A stretch of 64,000 bases of DNA from Scyliorhinus canicula (taxonomy: Eukaryota). The position numbers and the translations under genes are program-made. The stretch lies in assembly GCF_902713615.1 (NCBI RefSeq), contig NC_052146.1, positions 237,659,827 to 237,723,826 of the forward strand. The letters run 5' to 3'. This document shows, one piece after another, positions 34,917 through 60,455 of this stretch. The notes under the pieces are model-generated. The model had not been told where the DNA came from. It worked only from the letters and a program-made list of their open reading frames with translations, and ran no database searches. How positions within the stretch are numbered: the stretch's first letter is position 1; each line of letters begins with the position of its first letter.

Positions 34917-35907
34917 TAGTCTCCCAAAAGGTGAATTCCGGCACATATTTCTTTAAATAGCCCATTAAATGGTAACCAACATAACTTCAAGAGGTATGGA
35001 TGTTTTCCAACCAACATAATTATTTTTGAGACTGTAGAAATGACATTCTGAGAATGTAGAAGTGACATTCTATGTGGACCTTGGGCAGTCCTATCATGTG
35101 GTGGATCTAAACTTCTAAAAAGCCTTTAATAAAGTTCCAAATTAAAGGGTGCTATGCGGGCTTAAGGTTCTACATCTCTCTGTTTGGAGGCTGCTCAGAA
35201 ATTGGTTGAAAGGGAGGAAACAGCAAAACTATAGTTAAGTAAGTAATGCTGGGCTGAGGAAGTGTATTGCACGGTCTGAGCCCTGACGTTTCTGAGTGAT
35301 AAGGACAGCCCATCTCACTTGTCTTTCCTCCCCTGCCCCTTCCATGTTTGCATAACTGTACTTCAAAAATAATTTAATTGTACAAAGAATGCCGAAGAAT
35401 TACACTGAATGTGTCCTCAAAATGGAGTCAGTGATCAGACTGAATAGTAGTACATCAAAAGAAAACTACTGCGAATTAAAGCCATAAATGCTTGTGTGAA
35501 ATTAAACATTCCTTGCAATAACTGGGAGACATAAGCCATCAAGGCCACAGGCTTGGAAATAAACTGTTAGAAGATATAAATGTGTCACTTCTCATTGGAA
35601 AGCATGTAAGGCTGTTTGTTGCAGAAAAACTGCAAAGTTAAGTCGGTGAAAGTGCATCCTGGCATTGCTATATTCTGATGCTTTATTAATCGGAAGTCAA
35701 CCTGGGAACTGACTGGACTATGTGAGGTGATTGACACCTAAAGCTGTGAACTCCTCTGCTATGTGTAACTCAGAGTAGTTGATTATATTATTGAGATTTT
35801 TTTTACTCTCCAACATTCTCCAGGAAGATAAGATCATCCTCAAAGAACAAAGAACAAAGAACAAAGAAAAGTACAGCACAGGAACAGGCCCTCCGGCCCT
35901 CCAAGCC

Positions 35908-36793
35908 GGGAATGGGACAACTCATCGCCGCCGACTCATCGCCGCTGACTCATCGCCAGCCCAACTCATCGCCAGCCCAACTCATCGCCAGCCAACTCAT
36001 TGCCAGCCCAACTCATCGCCAGCCCAACTAAAAATTGAAATTCATGGTAATTCATGGTAAAAGCTGTCGGCGGCGGGTAACTTTTGAAAGGCCCGCACCA
36101 AGCATTTGATAGATAGACCGGCCGGCGAACCAAGTTATATCACAGTTCAGACCGGTGGTATTTCAAATTTAATTCATGGTAAAAGCTGTCGGCGGCGGGT
36201 AACTTTTGAACGGCCCGCACCAAGCATTTGATAGATAGACCGGCCGGCGAACCAAGTTATATCACAGTTCAGACCGGTGGTATTTCAAATTTAATTCATG
36301 GTAAAAGCTGTCGGTGGCGGGTAACTTTTGAGCGGCCCGCACCAAGCATTTGATAGATAGACCGGCCGGCGAACCAAGTTATATCACAGTTCAGACCGGT
36401 GGTATTTCAAATTCAATAAAAATTAATGGAGGTTAAAAGACTTATTTAACTGTGATATAACTTGGTTCGCCGGCCGGTCTATCTATCAAATGCTTGGTGC
36501 GGGCCGCTCAAAAGTTACCCGCCGCCGACAGCTTTTACCATGAATTAAATTTGAAATACCACCGGTCTGAACTGTGATATAACTTGGTTCGCCGGCCGGT
36601 CTATCTATCAAATGCTTGGTGCGGGCCGTTCAAATGTTACCCGCCGCCGACAGCTTTTACCATGAATTACCATGAATTTCAATTTTTAGTTGGGCTGGCG
36701 ATGAGTTGGGCTGGCGATGAGTTGGCTGGCGATGAGTTGGGCTGGCGATGAGTCGGCGGCGATGAGTCGGCCGCGATGAGTTGTCCTAGACCC
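35908..36793. mobile_element. Foldback/palindromic non-autonomous DNA transposon, Mutator (MULE)-like
   Basis: Termini GGGAATGGGACAACTCATCGC and (reverse complement) GGGTCTAGGACAACTCATCGC; 9-bp TSD CTCCAAGCC at 35899-35907 and 36794-36802. Arms are built of 14-16-nt repeats and 122-bp units. Confidence 0.85.
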
Positions 36794-37703
36794 CTCCAAG
36801 CCTGTGCCGACCATGCTGCCCGTCTAAACTAAAATCTTCCACACTTCCTGGGTCCGTATCCCTCTATTCCCATCCTATTCATGTATTTGTCAAGGTGCCC
36901 CTTAAATGTCCCTGCTTCCACCAACTCCTCCGGCAGCGAGTTCCAGGCACCCACTACCCTCTGTGTAAAAAAACTTGCCTTGTACACGTCCTCTAAACCT
37001 TACCCCACACACCTTAAACCTATGCCCCCTAGTAATTGACCCCTCTACCCTGGGAAAAAGCTTCTGACTATCCACTCTGTCTATGCCCCTCATCATTTTG
37101 TAGACCTCTATCAGATCGTCCCTCAACCTCCGTCGTTCCAGTGAGAACAAACAGAGTTTATTCAACTGCTCCTCATAGCTAATGCCGTCCATACCAGGCA
37201 ACATCCTGGTAAATCTCTTCAGCACCCTCTCTAAAGCCTCCACATCCTTCTGGTAGTGTGGCAACCAGAATTGAACATTATACTCCAAGCGTGGCCAAAC
37301 TAAGGTTCTATACAGCTGCAACGTGACTTGCCAATTCTTATACTCAATGCCAAGGCCAATGAAGGCAAGCATGCCATATGCCTTCTTGACTATCTTCTCC
37401 ACCTGTGTTGCCCCTTTCAGTGACCTGTGGACCTGTATACCTAGATCTCTCTGACTTTCAATACTCTTGAGGGTTCTACTATTTACTGTATATTCCCTAC
37501 CTGCATTAGACCTTCCAAAATGCATTACCTTACATTTGTCTGGATTAAACTCCATCTGCCATCTCTCCGCCCAAGTCTCCAAACGATCTAAATCCTGCTG
37601 TATCCTCTGACAGTCCTCATCGCTATCCGCAATTCCACCAACCTTTGTGTCGTCTGCAAACTTACTAATCAGACCAGTTACATTTTCCTCCAAATCATTT
37701 ATA

Positions 37704-37891
37704 TGAAATGAAATGAAATGAAAATCGCTTATTGTCACGAGTGGGCTTCAATGAAGTTACTGTGAAAAGCCCCTAGTCGCCATATTCCGGCGCCTGTTTG
37801 GGAAGGCTGTTACGGGAATCAAACCGCGCTGCTGGCCTGCCTTGGTCTGCTTCCAAAGCCAGCAATTTAGCCCAGTGTGCTAAACAGCCCC
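37704..37891 (-). mobile_element. Short tRNA-derived SINE with (TTTCA)n tail, nested in the CR1
   Basis: Reverse strand GGGGCTGTTTAGCACACTGGGCTAAA head with A/B-box-like motifs. The same family occurs at 54866-55030; tail fragment at 51405-51513. Confidence 0.75.
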
Positions 37892-40499
37892 TATACTACG
37901 AACAGCAAAGGTCCCAGCACAGATCCCTGTGGAACACCACTAGCCACAGCCCTCCAATTAGAAAAGCACCCTTCCATTGCTACTCTCTGCCTTCTATGAC
38001 CTAGCCAGTTCTGTATCCATCTTGCCAGCTCACTCCTGATCCTGTGTGACTTCACCTTTTGTTTTTTTTGGGGTTTTTTTTGTTTTTTGTTTTGTTTTTT
38101 TCCCACCCACCCCGACCACCTTTTGTACCAGTCTACCATGAGGGACCTTGTCAAAGGCCTTACTGAAGTCCATATAGACAACATCCACTGCCCTACCTGC
38201 ATCAATCATATTTGTGACAACCTCTTCAAAAAACTCTATCAAGTTCATGAGACACGACCTCCCCTTCATAAAACCGTGCTGCCTCTCGCTAATACGTCCA
38301 TTTGCTTCCAAATGGGAGTAGATCCTGTCTCGAAGAATTCTCTCCAGTAATTTCCCTACCACCGACGTAAGACTCACCAGCCTGTAGTTCCCTGGATTAT
38401 CCTTGCTACCCTTCTTAAAGAAATGAACAACATTGGCTATTCTCCAGTCCTCCGAAACATCACCTGAAGACAGTGAGGATCCGAAGATTTCTGTCAAGGC
38501 CTCAGCAATTTCCTCTCTAGCCTCCTTCAGTATTCTGGGGTAGATCCCATCAGGCCCTGGGGACTTATCTACCTTACTATTTTTCAAGATGCCTTGTCTT
38601 TTTGGATCTCCATGTGGCCCAGGCTATCTACACACCCTTCTCCAGGCTCAACATCCACCAATTCCTTCTCTTTGGTGAATACTGATGCAAAGTATTCATT
38701 TAGGACCTCGCCCATTTCCTTTGAATCCACACATAGATTCCCTTGCCTATCTTTCAATGGGCCAACCCTTTGCCTGGCTACTCTCTTGCTTTTTATGTAC
38801 GTGTAGAAAGCCTTGGGATTTTCCTTAACCCTATTTGCCAGTGACTTGTCGTGACCCCCTTCTAGCCCTCCTGACTCCTTGTTTAAGTTCCTTCCTACTT
38901 TCCTTATATTCCACACAGGCTTTGTCTGTTCCCAGCCTTCTAGCCCTGACAAATGCCTCCTTTTTCTTTTTGATGAGGCCGATAATATCTATCGTCATCC
39001 AAGGTTCCTGAAATTTGCCATATTTATCCTTCTTCCGCACAGGAACATGCCAGTCTTGAATTCCTTTCAACTGACATTTGAAAGCCTCCCACATGTCAGA
39101 TGATGATTTACCCTCAAACATCCGCCCGCAATCTAGGTTCTTCAGTTCCCGCCTAATATTGTTATAATTAGCCTTCCCCCAATTTAGCACATTCACCCTA
39201 GGACCACTCTTATCCTTGTCCACCAGCACTTTAAAACTTACTGAATTGTGGTCACTGTTCCTGAAATGCTCCCCTACTGAAACTTCTACCACCTGGCTGG
39301 TCTCATTTCCCAATACCAGGTCCAGTACAGCTCCTTCCCTAGTTGGACTATCTACATATTGTTTTAAGAAGCCCTCCTGGATGCTCCTTACAAACTTCGC
39401 CTCGTCTAAGCCCCTAGCACTAAGTGAGTCCCAGTCAATATTGGGGAAATTGAAATCTCCCATCACAACAACTTTGTTGCTTTTACTCCTTTCCAAGATC
39501 TGTCTACCTATTTCCTCTTCTATCTTCCGCTGGCTGTTGGGAGGCCTGTAGGACCCCCAACATTGTGGCTGTACCCTTCATATTCATGATCTCTACCCAT
39601 ATAGCCTCGCTGCCCTCTGAGGTGTCCTCCTGTAGTACAGCTGTGATATTCTCCCTAACCAGTAGCGCAACTCCGCCACCCCTTTTACATCCCCCTCTAT
39701 CCCGCCTGAAACATCTAAATCCTGGAATGTTTAGCTGCCAATCCTGTCCTTCCCTCAATCAGGTCTCTGTAATCGAAGCAACATCATAGTTCTAAGTACT
39801 AATCCAAGCTCTAAATTCATCTGCCTTACCCATAATACTTCTTGGATTAAAACATGCACTTCAGGCCACCAGACCCGCTGTTTTCAGCAACATCTCTCTG
39901 TCTGCTCTTCCACAGAGCCATACTGGCCCTATTCCCTAGTTCTCCCTCAATGCTTCCACCTTCTGACCTATTGCTCCATTACCCACCCCGCTGCCATACT
40001 AGTTTAAACCCTCCCGTGTGACACTAGCAAACCTCGCCGTCAGGATATTTATGCCTCTCCAGTTTAGATGCATCAGTCCTTCCTATACAGGTCACACCTG
40101 GCCCCGGAAAAGCTCCCAGTGGTCCAGATAACGGAAACCCTCCCTCCTACACCAGCTGTTTAGCCACGTGTTTAGCTGTTCTATCTTCCTATTTCTAGCC
40201 TCACTGGCACATGGCACAGGGTGTAATCCCGAGATTACACCTTTGAAGCCCTGTCTTTTAAACTTTCTACCTAGCTCCCTGAACTCCTGCTGCAGGACCT
40301 CATGCCCCTTCCTGCCTATGTCATTAGTACCAATATGTACAACGATCTCTGCCTGTTTATCCTCCCCCTTTAGGATGCCCGCTACCCGTTCTGAGACATC
40401 CTGGACCCTGGCACCAGGGAGGCAACATACCATCCTGGAGTCTCTTTCACGTCCACAGAAGCACCTATCTGTGTCCCAGAAGTGCCTATCTGTGCCCCC

Positions 40500-40720
40500 T
40501 TGTGCCTCCTTGGGGACTTTAACATTATGATTAGAAAGGACTCCCAAATCTCAAAAGGAACCATCAGAAAGGAAGGAGTTGGGAATTGCAACTCCAATGT
40601 GGTTCTCCTGCTCACCAAATGTGCAGAACACCAGCTTGTCATCACAAACACACTGTTCTGCCAAAACGTTCAAGGCTTCCTGGAGACATCCAAGATCAAA
40701 GCACTAGCACATGATCTGTT
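40500..40720 (+). mobile_element. RTE-like LINE endonuclease fragment
   Basis: LLGDFN...GVGNCNSN..LLL..CAEHQLVITNTLF is typical of the RTE/BovB APE domain. Confidence 0.65.
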
Positions 40721-42787: not shown

Positions 42788-43374
42788 GCACTTTGAGAAA
42801 AAGGAGTCATGATCTGAAGCGTATCACTAGAAGAGAAAAAGGTGGAAGTTGAAAGAAATGGTGTTCATAGAAAATTATTAGAATAAAGAATGTTTATATG
42901 AGAATAGCTATTGGAGACAGAGGCATGACTTCATTTAAAAATGAATTAGAATGGAAAGGCCAAAAATAAAGGGCAAAGATAGAGAAAATCACTGGTTCAG
43001 TGGATAGGAATAAGTTTTTATCAATTTTCAATTACTTTTGCTTGTTCCAGCCCTTTTGAAATCTTATCAATAAAACTGTAAAATTTATGACTCATTGTCT
43101 GAATGTGTTTCAGAATCATACTGAATCAATAAAATTCTGTTTTTATTGTTCCAGCTATTTTATATGAACAATGTCGATGAATATTACTATACTATTCAAT
43201 TATAGGAGGGATCATAACAGGTCTTGACCTCATTAAAATAAAGATATAGCATCGTTCACGATCATACGATGTTTCAAAACACTTTTCAGCGAATAAAATA
43301 TTTTTGAACTGTAGTCACTTTTAATGTTGGAATCGGCGCTGCCAAATTGTATACAGCAGGTCAACTATAAACCC

Positions 43375-43659
43375 CGGGCAGGCCTCCTTTACTAAATGGC
43401 AATTGCGAAAAACTCCGGAACTAATACTCCTTTGCTAAGATGATCATCGCTCTCGGCCACCGTCTCCTTTACTAACATGGCCGTCGAATAGAGTCTCACG
43501 AAATAAGATGGCCATCGATCTCGGCCATCGAACCTGGCTATCGATTAGCGTTTCCTTTACGAAGATGGCCGGGACCGACTTAATTCGCTTCCTGCTGCTC
43601 AGCGGCGATGTGTATTGTGGGAACTAAAATGGCGGCTTCCAGGCAATGAAGAGTGTCAG
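43375..43659 (+). promoter_or_regulatory. MTIF2: Putative MTIF2 promoter and non-coding first exon
   Basis: Non-TE CpG-rich island upstream of the MTIF2 coding exons. YY1-type AAAATGGCGGC at 43626-43636, several AAGATGGCC-like motifs, ETS-like CCGGAA/CTTCC motifs, candidate donor CAG|gtaccc at 43659/43660. Confidence 0.6.
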
Positions 43660-43977
43660 GTACCCTTGTAGATACATTGCTAATTAATATGGTCTGTATC
43701 CTAGCTTGTCAGTTGGACTCTGATAGGTAGGTAGCGGAGGTTAATAAAATTTGGGCAATGTAAGGTTATAGTTGACCTGCTGTATGCAATTCGGCCGGTA
43801 GTGCTGCTCCACGATTCGAACAGATCATGAATGATTATCTCCCTCAACACCATTTTCCCCTCACTATTCCCGTATCCTTGCTGTCATTAGTTTTCAAATT
43901 TCTGTCTTGAACATGTTCAATGAACTTACACAGCTCCCTGAGTTAGAGAATGCCAAAGATTAACCATCCTCTGTGAT

Positions 43978-45304
43978 CACAGGAAGAAGTCTTACAGGTT
44001 AAAGTCCAACATATTTGTTTCAAACACTAGCTTTCGAAGCACTGCTCCTTCCTCAGGTGAATGAAGAGGTATGTTCCAGAAACATATATATAGACAAATT
44101 CAAAGATGCCAGACAATGCTTAGAATGCGAGCATTTGCAGGTAATTAAGTCTTTACAGATCCAGAGATACGGATAACCCCAGGTTAAAGAGGTGTGAATT
44201 GTCTCAAACCAGGACAATTGGTAGGATTTTGCAAGCCCAGGCCAGATGGTGGGGGATGAATGTAATGCGACATGAATCCCAGGTCCCGGTTGAGGCTGCA
44301 CTCGTGTGCGGAACTTGGCTATAAGTTTCTGCTCGGTGATTCTCCATTGTCACGCGTCCTGAAGGTCGCCTTGGAGAACGCTTAACCAGAGATCAGAGGC
44401 TGAATGCCCTTGACTGCTGAAGTGTTTCCCGACGGGAAGGGAACATTCCTGCCTGGTGATTGTCGCGCGATGTCCGGTCATTCATTGTCGCAGCGTCTGC
44501 ATGGTCTCGCTAATGTACCACGCTTCGGGACATCCTTTCCTGCAGCGTATGAGTTAGAAGACATTGGCCGAGTCACATGAGTATGTACCATGTACCTGGT
44601 GGGTGGTGCCCTCACGTGTAATGGTGGTGCCCATGTCGATGATCTGCCATGTCTTGCAGAGATTGCCATGGCAGGGTTGTGGTGTCATGGTCGCTGTTCT
44701 GAAGGCTAGGTAGTTTGCTGCAAACAATGGTTTGTTTGAGGTTGCGCGGCTGTTTGAAGGCAAGTAGTGGGGGGTGGGGATGACCTTGGCAAGATGTTCA
44801 TCTTCATCGATGACGTGTTGAAGGCTGCGAAGAAGATGTTGTAGTTTCTCCGCTCCGGGAAAGTACTGGACGGCGAAGGGTACTCTGTCGGTTGTGTCCT
44901 GTGTTTGTCTTCCGAGGAGGTCGGTGCGGTTTTTTGCTGTGGCGCGTTGGAACTGTCGATCGATGAGTCGAGCGCCATATCCCGTTCGTACGAGGGCATC
45001 TTTCAGCGTCTGTAGATGTCTGTTACGCTCCTCCTCGTCTGAGCAGATCCTGTGTATATGGAGGGCTTGTCCTTTGGGGATGGCCTCTTTAATGTGTTTA
45101 GGGTGGAAGCCGGAGAAGTGGAGCATCGTGAGGCTATCCGTGGGCTTGCAGTAAAGCGAGGTGCTGAGGTGACCGTCCTTGATGGAGACGAGTGTGTCCA
45201 AGAATGCAACTGATTTTGGAGAGTAGTCCATGGTGAGTCTGATGGTGGGATGGAATTTATTGATGTCGTTGTGTAGTCGTTTCAGTGATTCTTCGCTGTG
45301 GGTC
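43978..45304 (-). mobile_element. Penelope-like element (RT C-terminus and GIY-YIG region), 5'-truncated
   Basis: INKFHPTIRLT...FLD...YCKPTD, then PCHGNLCKT...YSCDSANV. Confidence 0.8.
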
Positions 45305-47034
45305 CTCAAAACAATCTTAAGAAATTTGTCAAAGGGATTCCCCTTTTGTAATATCATTTTGACTTATTCTAATGGTACTATGCTTTTCTAAGCTCAAAAG
45401 ATTTCTTTAATAATAGGTTCCAGCATTTTCTCAACAACTAATGTTAGGTTTGTAATTCACCGTTTTCTCTTTTCCCTTCTTATTTGAAAAGCGGGATAAT
45501 ATTTTGTCAATCTGGTGGGACTATTCCTGATTCTAAGGAGTTTTGGAAAATCATAGATAGCACATCCACTATTTCTTCAGCTATCTCTTTTAGAACTATA
45601 GAAGCATTATAGTGCAGAAGGAGGCCATTTAGTCTATTGAGTCAGCACCGACCCCCCGAAAGAACACCCCATCCAGGCCAACTCTCCTGCCCTGGCCCCG
45701 TAATCCCCATTACCCCACCTAATCTGCAATTTATCATGGCCAATCCATCTAACCTGCATATCTTTGGACTGTGGGAGGAAACCGGAGCACCCGGAGGAAA
45801 TCCATGCAGACATGGGGAGAAAGTGTAAACACCACACAGTCACACAATGCTGGAATTGAACCCGGTTCTTGGTTGCTATGGGGCAGCAGTGCTAACCACT
45901 GTAAAAGGAGGAGTCAGGATGATTAAGGGCCAAAAATGAGTTTTACATATAGAGACAGGGGGAATAGCTGAAGTATTAAATTAATACTTTACATTTGTGT
46001 TTTTGAAGGAAGAAGATACTATGGTGAAAGGGGAATTAATTCAGAAACTTAAAGGGTTTAAAATTAATAAGGAAGTTAGACAGGCTGTCTATATTTAAAA
46101 TTGATAAGGCACCAGCATCAGATAGAATCAAGGATACTGAGGGAAATTAACCATCACGATCTCACACTCACATTTCTGTCCTCAACCTATGCAGTGTTAA
46201 ATCCAATTCAAGCTGCAGGAACAGTGCTTTATCTTCTGATTAGACACTTTACAGCCTTCTGGACTCAACGTTGAGCCTTCTGGACTCAACGTTGAGTTCG
46301 ACAACTTTAGATCATTAACTCTGTTCTCCATTTTGAATTTCTCTTCACCGAGTTTCAGTTTGTATCTTGTTTTCATTTTATTGCTTTCATAGCTGACCTT
46401 TATTCTTCTATTAACACCTACTCTGGATCAGTGCTCTGTTTTCTTACTACTACCATTACCTCACTGTCGCCTTTTGTTCCATGACTCTTTGTTATTTTTC
46501 TCTTCCTCCTTCTCACCTATCCCAACCTTCCCTTTTGTTCCACCTGATGCCTCCCATTATGCAAAAGCATGAAACCCATCACATTTCTACCTCTCTTCAG
46601 TTCCAAAGACGAGTCATATTGGACTTTAAATGTTAACTCTGGTTTTTCTCCACGGATGCTGCTAGACCACTGTGTTTTTCCAGCATTTTCTATTTTGATA
46701 TAAGGCTGAGAGGAGATTGTTTTGAGGGATTCAAAATCATGAGGAGCCTGGGCAGAATAGGTTGGGAGAAACTGTTTCCACTGGTAAAAGGATTAAGAAC
46801 AAGAGGACATAGATTTAAAGCAGTTGGCAAAAGAAGCAAAAGCACATGGGGTTACGGGGATAGGGTGAAGGTGTGGGCTTAGGTAGGGTGCTCTTTCCAA
46901 GGGTCAGTGCCAACTTGATGGGCAGAATGGCCTCCTTCTGCACGGTAAATTCTATGATTCCAAGCAGCGAGGGATTAAGGTCTGGAATCGACTACCTAAT
47001 AGTCTGATGAAGGCATGTTCAATCAAGACATTCA

Positions 47035-60294: not shown

Positions 60295-60455
60295 GCCGCA
60301 CTCAGATCCAACTGTGCTCGTTCCCAAGTCACCTGTAGTTACTATAATGGGTCACGTTGACCATGGAAAAACAACATTACTTGACAGTCTTAGGAAAACT
60401 CAGGTTGCAGCTAAGGAGGCAGGAGGTATCACTCAACATATTGGCGCATTCCTTG
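60295..60455 (+). CDS. MTIF2: MTIF2 exon at the start of the G domain; gene continues beyond the window
   Basis: ttttag|G CCG...CTT G|gtatgt, 161 nt. [18 protein letters not shown] (P-loop) and [12 protein letters not shown], diagnostic of IF2. Confidence 0.96.

Follow-up and report, generated by a model that had tools for sequence, protein, structure and literature searches.

A modular foldback element, probably of Mutator type, inserted in a decayed LINE of a catshark genome

A near-perfect, modular palindrome of 886 bp lies at 35908-36793 of the window, which is the whole 64-kb stretch of DNA analysed here and contains no N. This palindrome is probably a gene-less, non-autonomous "type-2 foldback" cut-and-paste DNA transposon of a Mutator-type family. 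The original prediction, a Mutator/Foldback-like transposon, is upheld as regards a real, multi-copy insertion with foldback architecture; its appeal to the target-site duplication (TSD) and the G termini is less decisive, as both fit the Merlin superfamily equally well.

No coding capacity was found in the element, whose open reading frames measure only 39-55 aa. Neither an RNA family above the Rfam threshold nor a tRNA was found in the element, the best Rfam matches being long miRNA-precursor hairpins (65.9 bits versus a gathering score of 200), and its reading as an RNA gene was rejected on these grounds.

Structure of the element

From the outside inwards, each arm runs through a 12-nt tip, an array of short repeats with a 10-bp core, a junction motif, and tandem units of 122 bp (Table 1). 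The arms are about 360-480 bp long, the TIRs thus exceeding 100 bp, and about 94% of the shark element is palindrome. In the repeat search, the arms complement each other at 98% along a stretch of 309 nt and at 99% along another of 222 nt. The layout proposed earlier (seven and six short repeats, three units on the left, and an inverted partial plus a full unit on the right) was found at the positions originally given for it, and the AT-rich spacer, placed at about 36414-36447, was recovered within the unpaired centre of the palindrome.

Table 1. Features of the foldback element, its target-site duplication, and the interrupted LINE (positions are those of the window)
Feature	Position	Strand	Sequence, remarks, or basis
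Host CR1/L2-type LINE copy, decayed	35841..40547	-	Pfam domains, contig abundance
Target-site duplication, left copy	35899..35907	.	CTCCAAGCC; identity runs two bases further, to 35897
Left terminal tip	35908..35919	+	GGGAATGGGACA; GGG start
Left subterminal array, seven repeats of core ACTCATCGCC	35920..36026	+	Arm splitting, repeat search, motif count
Inner junction motif, left	36027..36048	+	ACTAAAAATTGAAATTCATGGT; common to other family copies
Three tandem 122-bp units (starts 36049, 36171, 36293)	36049..36414	+	97-99% alike
Unpaired centre, 56 nt	36392..36447	.	Gap between complementary arms
Unique AT-rich spacer	about 36415-36447	.	Within unpaired centre
1.8 inverted 122-bp units, inner truncated, outer full	36448..36669	-	Repeat search, arm splitting
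Junction motif, right copy	36670..36690	-	Arm splitting
Right subterminal array, six repeats of core ACTCATCGCC	36691..36781	-	Arm splitting, repeat search, motif count
Right terminal tip	36782..36793	-	Reverse complement GGGTCTAGGACA; CCC end
Target-site duplication, right copy	36794..36802	.	CTCCAAGCC; identity runs back to 36792

The two tips are identical at 8 of 12 positions and are in register only with a 9-bp TSD. Inward of them, the short repeats measure 14, 14, 16, 16, 15, 16, and 16 bp in the left arm and, on the reverse complement, 14, 14, 16, 15, 16, and 16 bp in the right arm, a spacing for which Tandem Repeats Finder gives a period of 16 bp over both 35918-36029 and 36688-36783. 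Each left repeat starts with the core, followed by a linker of 4-6 bp. The linkers fall into two classes and are variable, in contrast to the conserved core, which is intact in 11 of the 13 short repeats; one of the exceptions is a CpG-to-TpG change. All nine matches to the core motif in the window lie within the element, against an expectation of 0.29. The cores are the presumed binding sites of the transposase.

The 122-bp units are similarly confined to the element, with five matches in the window (0 expected) and none outside the palindrome. In the left arm, Tandem Repeats Finder resolves them as 3.0 copies of period 122 with 98% likeness at 36048-36417. Folded as single-stranded DNA, the element attains -474.7 kcal/mol versus -131 kcal/mol for shuffled sequences (z = -78). 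The hairpin of a single strand is thus predicted to be very stable, and cruciform extrusion from the duplex may be possible.

Insertion site and target-site duplication

The element interrupts a dead LINE whose domains are spread over several broken frames. Pfam identifies an ORF1 remnant of the GDSL/OSK esterase type at 40092-40547, an endonuclease remnant at 38831-39496, and reverse transcriptase remnants at 38030-38587 and 36902-37738. The LINE ends at its 3′ side in (TTCTTTG)4 at 35841-35868, and the element lies about 40 bp inward of that microsatellite. The earlier description of a split "CR1 3′ tail" is therefore a fair one for this CR1/L2-type copy.

The same LINE family is extremely abundant in the contigs of both species surveyed below. 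Loose contig ends that stem from other LINE copies read through the insertion point, as ...CAGGCCCTTCGG before 36792 and as TGTGCCGATCATG... after 35907. Their consensus gives the uninterrupted target as ...CTTCGG CCCTCCAAGCC TGTGCCGA... (in a shorter span, ...CGG CCCTCCAAGCC TGTGCC...). Because the flanks of the element join into this uninterrupted LINE consensus, the palindrome represents an insertion with target duplication.

Eleven identical bases, CCCTCCAAGCC, flank the element at 35897-35907 and 36792-36802, and in the single copy examined the TSD is accordingly 9-11 bp long. A length of 9 bp is preferred since it yields symmetric GGG...CCC termini and two tips of 12 nt in register, while 10 or 11 bp would leave tips of unequal length. 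The perfect 9-bp TSD with GGG...CCC termini that had been proposed holds when 9 bp is chosen, but this length is not unique given the 11 identical bases.

Copy number and species range

Logan contigs of four runs were aligned to 35650-37050. Organism A is represented by three samples of the same species from three studies (runs including X1, X2, and X15), and organism C is a related species (X10). Contigs of all three organism A samples contain internal junctions of the element, at a depth about 35-100 times that of single-copy sequence. The boundary of the outer right unit with the short repeats is crossed by a 170-nt contig whose depth is 276.5 in X1, versus 2.7 for the single-copy flank, and the same junction contig is present in X15, a further individual. 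The corresponding bins of X2 stand at about 143-156 versus 4.24 in the flank. Bins over the short repeats are much deeper than those over the unit/short-repeat junctions. The junction occurs some tens of times per genome, a rough figure as contig depth does not equal copy number.

Other copies of the family differ in their interior. In these, contig joints lead from the junction motif into GTGC and the "spacer" sequence, and connect 36449 to 36413 with 20 letters between them or 36048 to 36413. The "spacer" together with AATTGAAATTCATGGTGTGC forms a 57-bp direct tandem unit that takes the place of the 122-bp units; interiors of at least two types therefore exist within the family. X15 also yields a 122-bp unit that has diverged by six A-to-G differences.

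In organism C, no contig covers 35932-36777 at 90% likeness or more, though the host LINE is present there at very high depth. These observations indicate a family that is multi-copy and lineage-restricted, being absent from the one related species surveyed when a likeness of at least 90% is required. Contig joints that skip the element ("skip" joints) were considered as an empty allele and rejected; they derive from other high-copy LINE copies and are found in organism C as well.

Beyond these species, viral and metagenome contigs were scanned for three spaced ACTCATCGCC cores, with matches in 1 viral contig and 35 metagenome contigs and no foreign relative among them. The matches are microbial tandem repeats unrelated to the element, with a period of 15 bp in most cases, and were rejected; their BLAST likeness is limited to the short-repeat part. 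Contig L004, the only match with a 16-bp period, was also rejected as a relative; it is prokaryote-like, holds other short tandem repeats, and is without an inverted partner. Many of the metagenome contigs (L002-L036) hold arrays of 14-16-bp period with the 10-mer ACTCATCGCC and are unrelated to the element. As many unrelated microbial contigs carry it, the repeated 10-mer is a poor family probe in large collections. A protein search with the 55-aa arm ORF retrieved no relatives, and a literature search for the repeat motif returned unrelated PCR primers only. The same genome may harbor other foldback or MULE-like miniature elements that have 9-bp TSDs but are built on repeats unlike those described here, among them TTTTGGCGC arrays and modular TIRs of 128 bp.

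Age and origin of the arms

Undecayed CpGs, a perfect TSD, and near-identical arms indicate a young insertion. The CpG o/e is 1.13 in the element, compared with 0.29 on one side and 0.38 on the other within 2 kb and with 0.43 across the whole window, which bears out the recent insertion originally proposed from the preservation of CpGs. Of the inter-arm differences, only two are CpG-to-TpG changes. The likeness of the arms is a weak clock, however, because exchange between them may inflate it.

The arms are alike except in the number of 122-bp units and of 16-bp repeats, each differing by one, and in a few private substitutions. One of these, T at 36635, is seen in this copy alone, the multi-copy contig having A. 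The 122-bp units vary at one multi-state site, which reads GAAAGG, GAACGG, and GAGCGG in the first, second, and third left units and GAGCGG and GAACGG in the inner and outer right units. Similarly, counted from the inside, the lone 15-bp short repeat occupies the third place in either arm. The mirror symmetry of variants that had been noted from the sequence is thereby confirmed at the unit site and extends to the position of the 15-bp repeat. This mirrored order, read outwards from the centre, indicates that the arms are copies of one already diversified array. The palindrome may have originated by inverted duplication of that array, or exchange may have kept the arms uniform; later slippage would have gained or lost one 122-bp unit and one 16-bp repeat.

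Comparison with known foldback elements

The closest architectural parallels are found among elements with short tips and subterminal tandem repeats. Muta1 of Aedes aegypti is a type 2 foldback of the Mutator superfamily, 3.2 kb long, that encodes its transposase (PMC5499845). In its TIR of 145 bp, a tip of 10 bp is followed by nine subterminal repeats of 12 bp with linkers of 3-4 bp, and its TSDs are 8-9 bp long (PMC5499845). The repeats of Muta1 strengthen both binding and cleavage by the transposase, and differences between its arms are confined to the linkers (PMC5499845). Like Muta1, the shark element has a short tip followed by evenly spaced subterminal repeats (six to nine across the two elements, with a period of about 15-16 bp), near-identical arms, and a conserved core with variable linkers. 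Unlike Muta1, it is only 886 bp long and gene-less, its arms extend inward via the 122-bp units, and the two share no sequence similarity.

Tm1 of Meloidogyne, which comprises MITE-like and histone-hairpin elements, belongs to the Phantom subclass of Mutator/Foldback elements (PMC3169594). Its tips are asymmetric and 7 bp long, and they are followed by 13-15-bp tandem repeats in variable number and by a conserved inner motif; the arms are unequal, TSDs are mostly 9 bp (8-10 bp), and members are mainly non-autonomous (PMC3169594). The shark element resembles Tm1 in its composite TIRs, asymmetric short tips, tandem repeats, inner motif, unequal repeat numbers per arm, and 9-bp-type TSD. It differs in sequence and host (shark versus nematode), and Tm1 is linked to a transposase-encoding member.

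The Drosophila Foldback element (FB) consists almost entirely of two long inverted arms of tandem repeats, in which the repeat unit grows inwards, and it produces a 9-bp TSD. The shark element is of similar build but has other repeat units and another sequence, while FB has an insect host and arms that are much longer and more variable.

Galileo of the P superfamily has long foldback-like TIRs with multiple transposase-binding sites (PMC3688188). The shark element is comparable, with long foldback-like TIRs and multiple sites that are here presumed to bind a transposase. The TSD of Galileo is 7 bp, in contrast to the at least nine bases duplicated around the shark element.

In the Rehavkus group, which is MuDR-related, the TSD is 9 bp, the TIRs measure 26-400 bp, a minisatellite precedes the 3′ TIR, and the transposase has a PHD finger; the group has so far been reported from arthropods and annelids only (PMC6446971). 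The shark element fits in TSD and TIR length but carries tandem units in each of its arms instead of just ahead of the 3′ TIR.

Classification and alternative explanations

MULE target-site duplications are 8-11 bp long, typically 9 bp, and 9-11 identical bases flank the one copy examined here. MULE foldbacks further combine TIRs of more than 100 bp with a short tip and tandem repeats of about 12-15 bp; the period in the shark element is 14-16 bp. To judge from TSD length and architecture, the transposase is most likely one of the Mutator superfamily of the Phantom/FLYWCH-MULE type. Membership in this superfamily is decided by termini held in common with an element that encodes a MULE DDE transposase, which in Phantom has a FLYWCH/WRKY-type zinc finger.

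In the mechanism proposed for such an element, the transposase would be supplied in trans by an autonomous relative and would bind the ACTCATCGCC array cooperatively as an oligomer. The ends of the element would then be cut out and joined to the target, the older LINE 3′ tail, with a stagger of 9 bp and at most 11 bp.

Alternatively, though this is unlikely, the foldback form could be that of an element from a different DDE superfamily (P/Galileo-like, hAT-like, or other) or from one not yet described. Foldback structures have arisen more than once, in the P superfamily (Galileo) as well as among MULEs (FB, Muta1, and Tm1), and structure alone is an unreliable classifier. TSDs of 7-8 bp in P and 8 bp in hAT are shorter than the at least nine identical flanking bases found here, and either superfamily would require one to three extra bases to match by chance (~0.25 per base). 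CACTA was rejected for its 2-3-bp TSD, as were piggyBac, Harbinger, and Tc1 for their targets (TTAA, TAA, and TA, respectively).

A further alternative retains the non-autonomous foldback and assigns its mobilisation to a Merlin (IS1016/IS1595-like) transposase, which is characterized by the domain DDE_Tnp_IS1595. Merlin elements have TIRs of 24-462 bp, a conserved terminal 5′-GG, and TSDs of 8 or 9 bp (PMC8101967), and constitute an accepted vertebrate superfamily (PMC5753468). The shark element agrees in its GGG tip, in the length of its TIRs, and in its vertebrate host, and its TSD may be one of 9 bp, the identical stretch being 11 bp. Against this assignment, which appears quite improbable, a tip followed by a regular subterminal array of 14-16-bp period is documented for MULE and P foldbacks and no such description was found for Merlin; a true TSD of 10 or 11 bp, which the 11 identical bases would allow, would also be a misfit.

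Finally, it is barely credible that no mobile element is involved and that the palindrome was either generated locally or produced by a fold-back in the assembly: chimeric long reads can yield long near-perfect palindromes and no short-read contig spans the whole element, but the boundaries are precise, the target is duplicated in a LINE of known uninterrupted consensus, the internal junctions (unit/short repeat and loop) recur in three independent samples, many times deeper than single-copy sequence, and no element sequence derives from the flanks. The precise boundaries and the multi-copy junctions in contigs thus largely refute an artefact.

Genomic context

The element was originally suggested to lie between two divergent promoters, which is not supported: it lies inside a dead LINE, and CpG-rich segment mapping places the strong CpG islands at 10.2-13.2 kb and 62-63.7 kb, no nearer than 23 kb to it. 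The translation of an exon-sized stretch at 60323-60451 (+) matches the beginning of the Escherichia coli IF-2 G-domain with 77% identity across 43 aa, a similarity that fits an exon of an MTIF2-like gene. The element may lie upstream of this putative gene or in one of its introns.

Two other segments of the window deserve mention. The first, of 455 bp at 43341-43795, has 30-nt inverted repeats at its ends (93% complementary), a CpG o/e above 1, and several copies of an CCTTTACTAA-ATGGC-like motif in its interior. No clear TSD was seen by eye around it, and it may be another young miniature transposon. The second is a 267-aa ORF with an ATG start at 44554-45357 (-), within a CpG-rich segment (44.2-45.3 kb, o/e 0.8-1.15); it has no Pfam match.

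Significance

Plants, fungi, and invertebrates are well-established hosts of Mutator-superfamily elements. Foldback elements of the present kind are rarely documented in vertebrates, and the interest of this one is moderate owing to its vertebrate host; the single copy on its own is an ordinary passenger within a dead LINE. The view that such elements are uncommon in vertebrates, expressed at the outset, agrees with Dupeyron et al. 2019, who confirmed no vertebrate MULE and questioned whether these elements are truly absent from vertebrates (PMC6446971). A young, multi-copy, lineage-restricted shark foldback family with MULE-type ends would strengthen the case for vertebrate hosts.

A bolder reading is a possible, if doubtful, one: that this Mutator-type foldback family of one catshark lineage was mobile recently, and perhaps still is, driven by a horizontally acquired autonomous MULE. 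If so, sharks would be vertebrates with live Mutator transposition, the existence of which the main survey doubted (PMC6446971). The original suggestion of an active or horizontally acquired family has in its favor only that contigs of one related species lack the element at a likeness of 90% or above. Such a family would also supply a natural set of candidate transposase-binding repeats. Knowledge of it aids the annotation of shark genomes; near-perfect palindromes of such length are difficult to assemble and easily deleted or rearranged.
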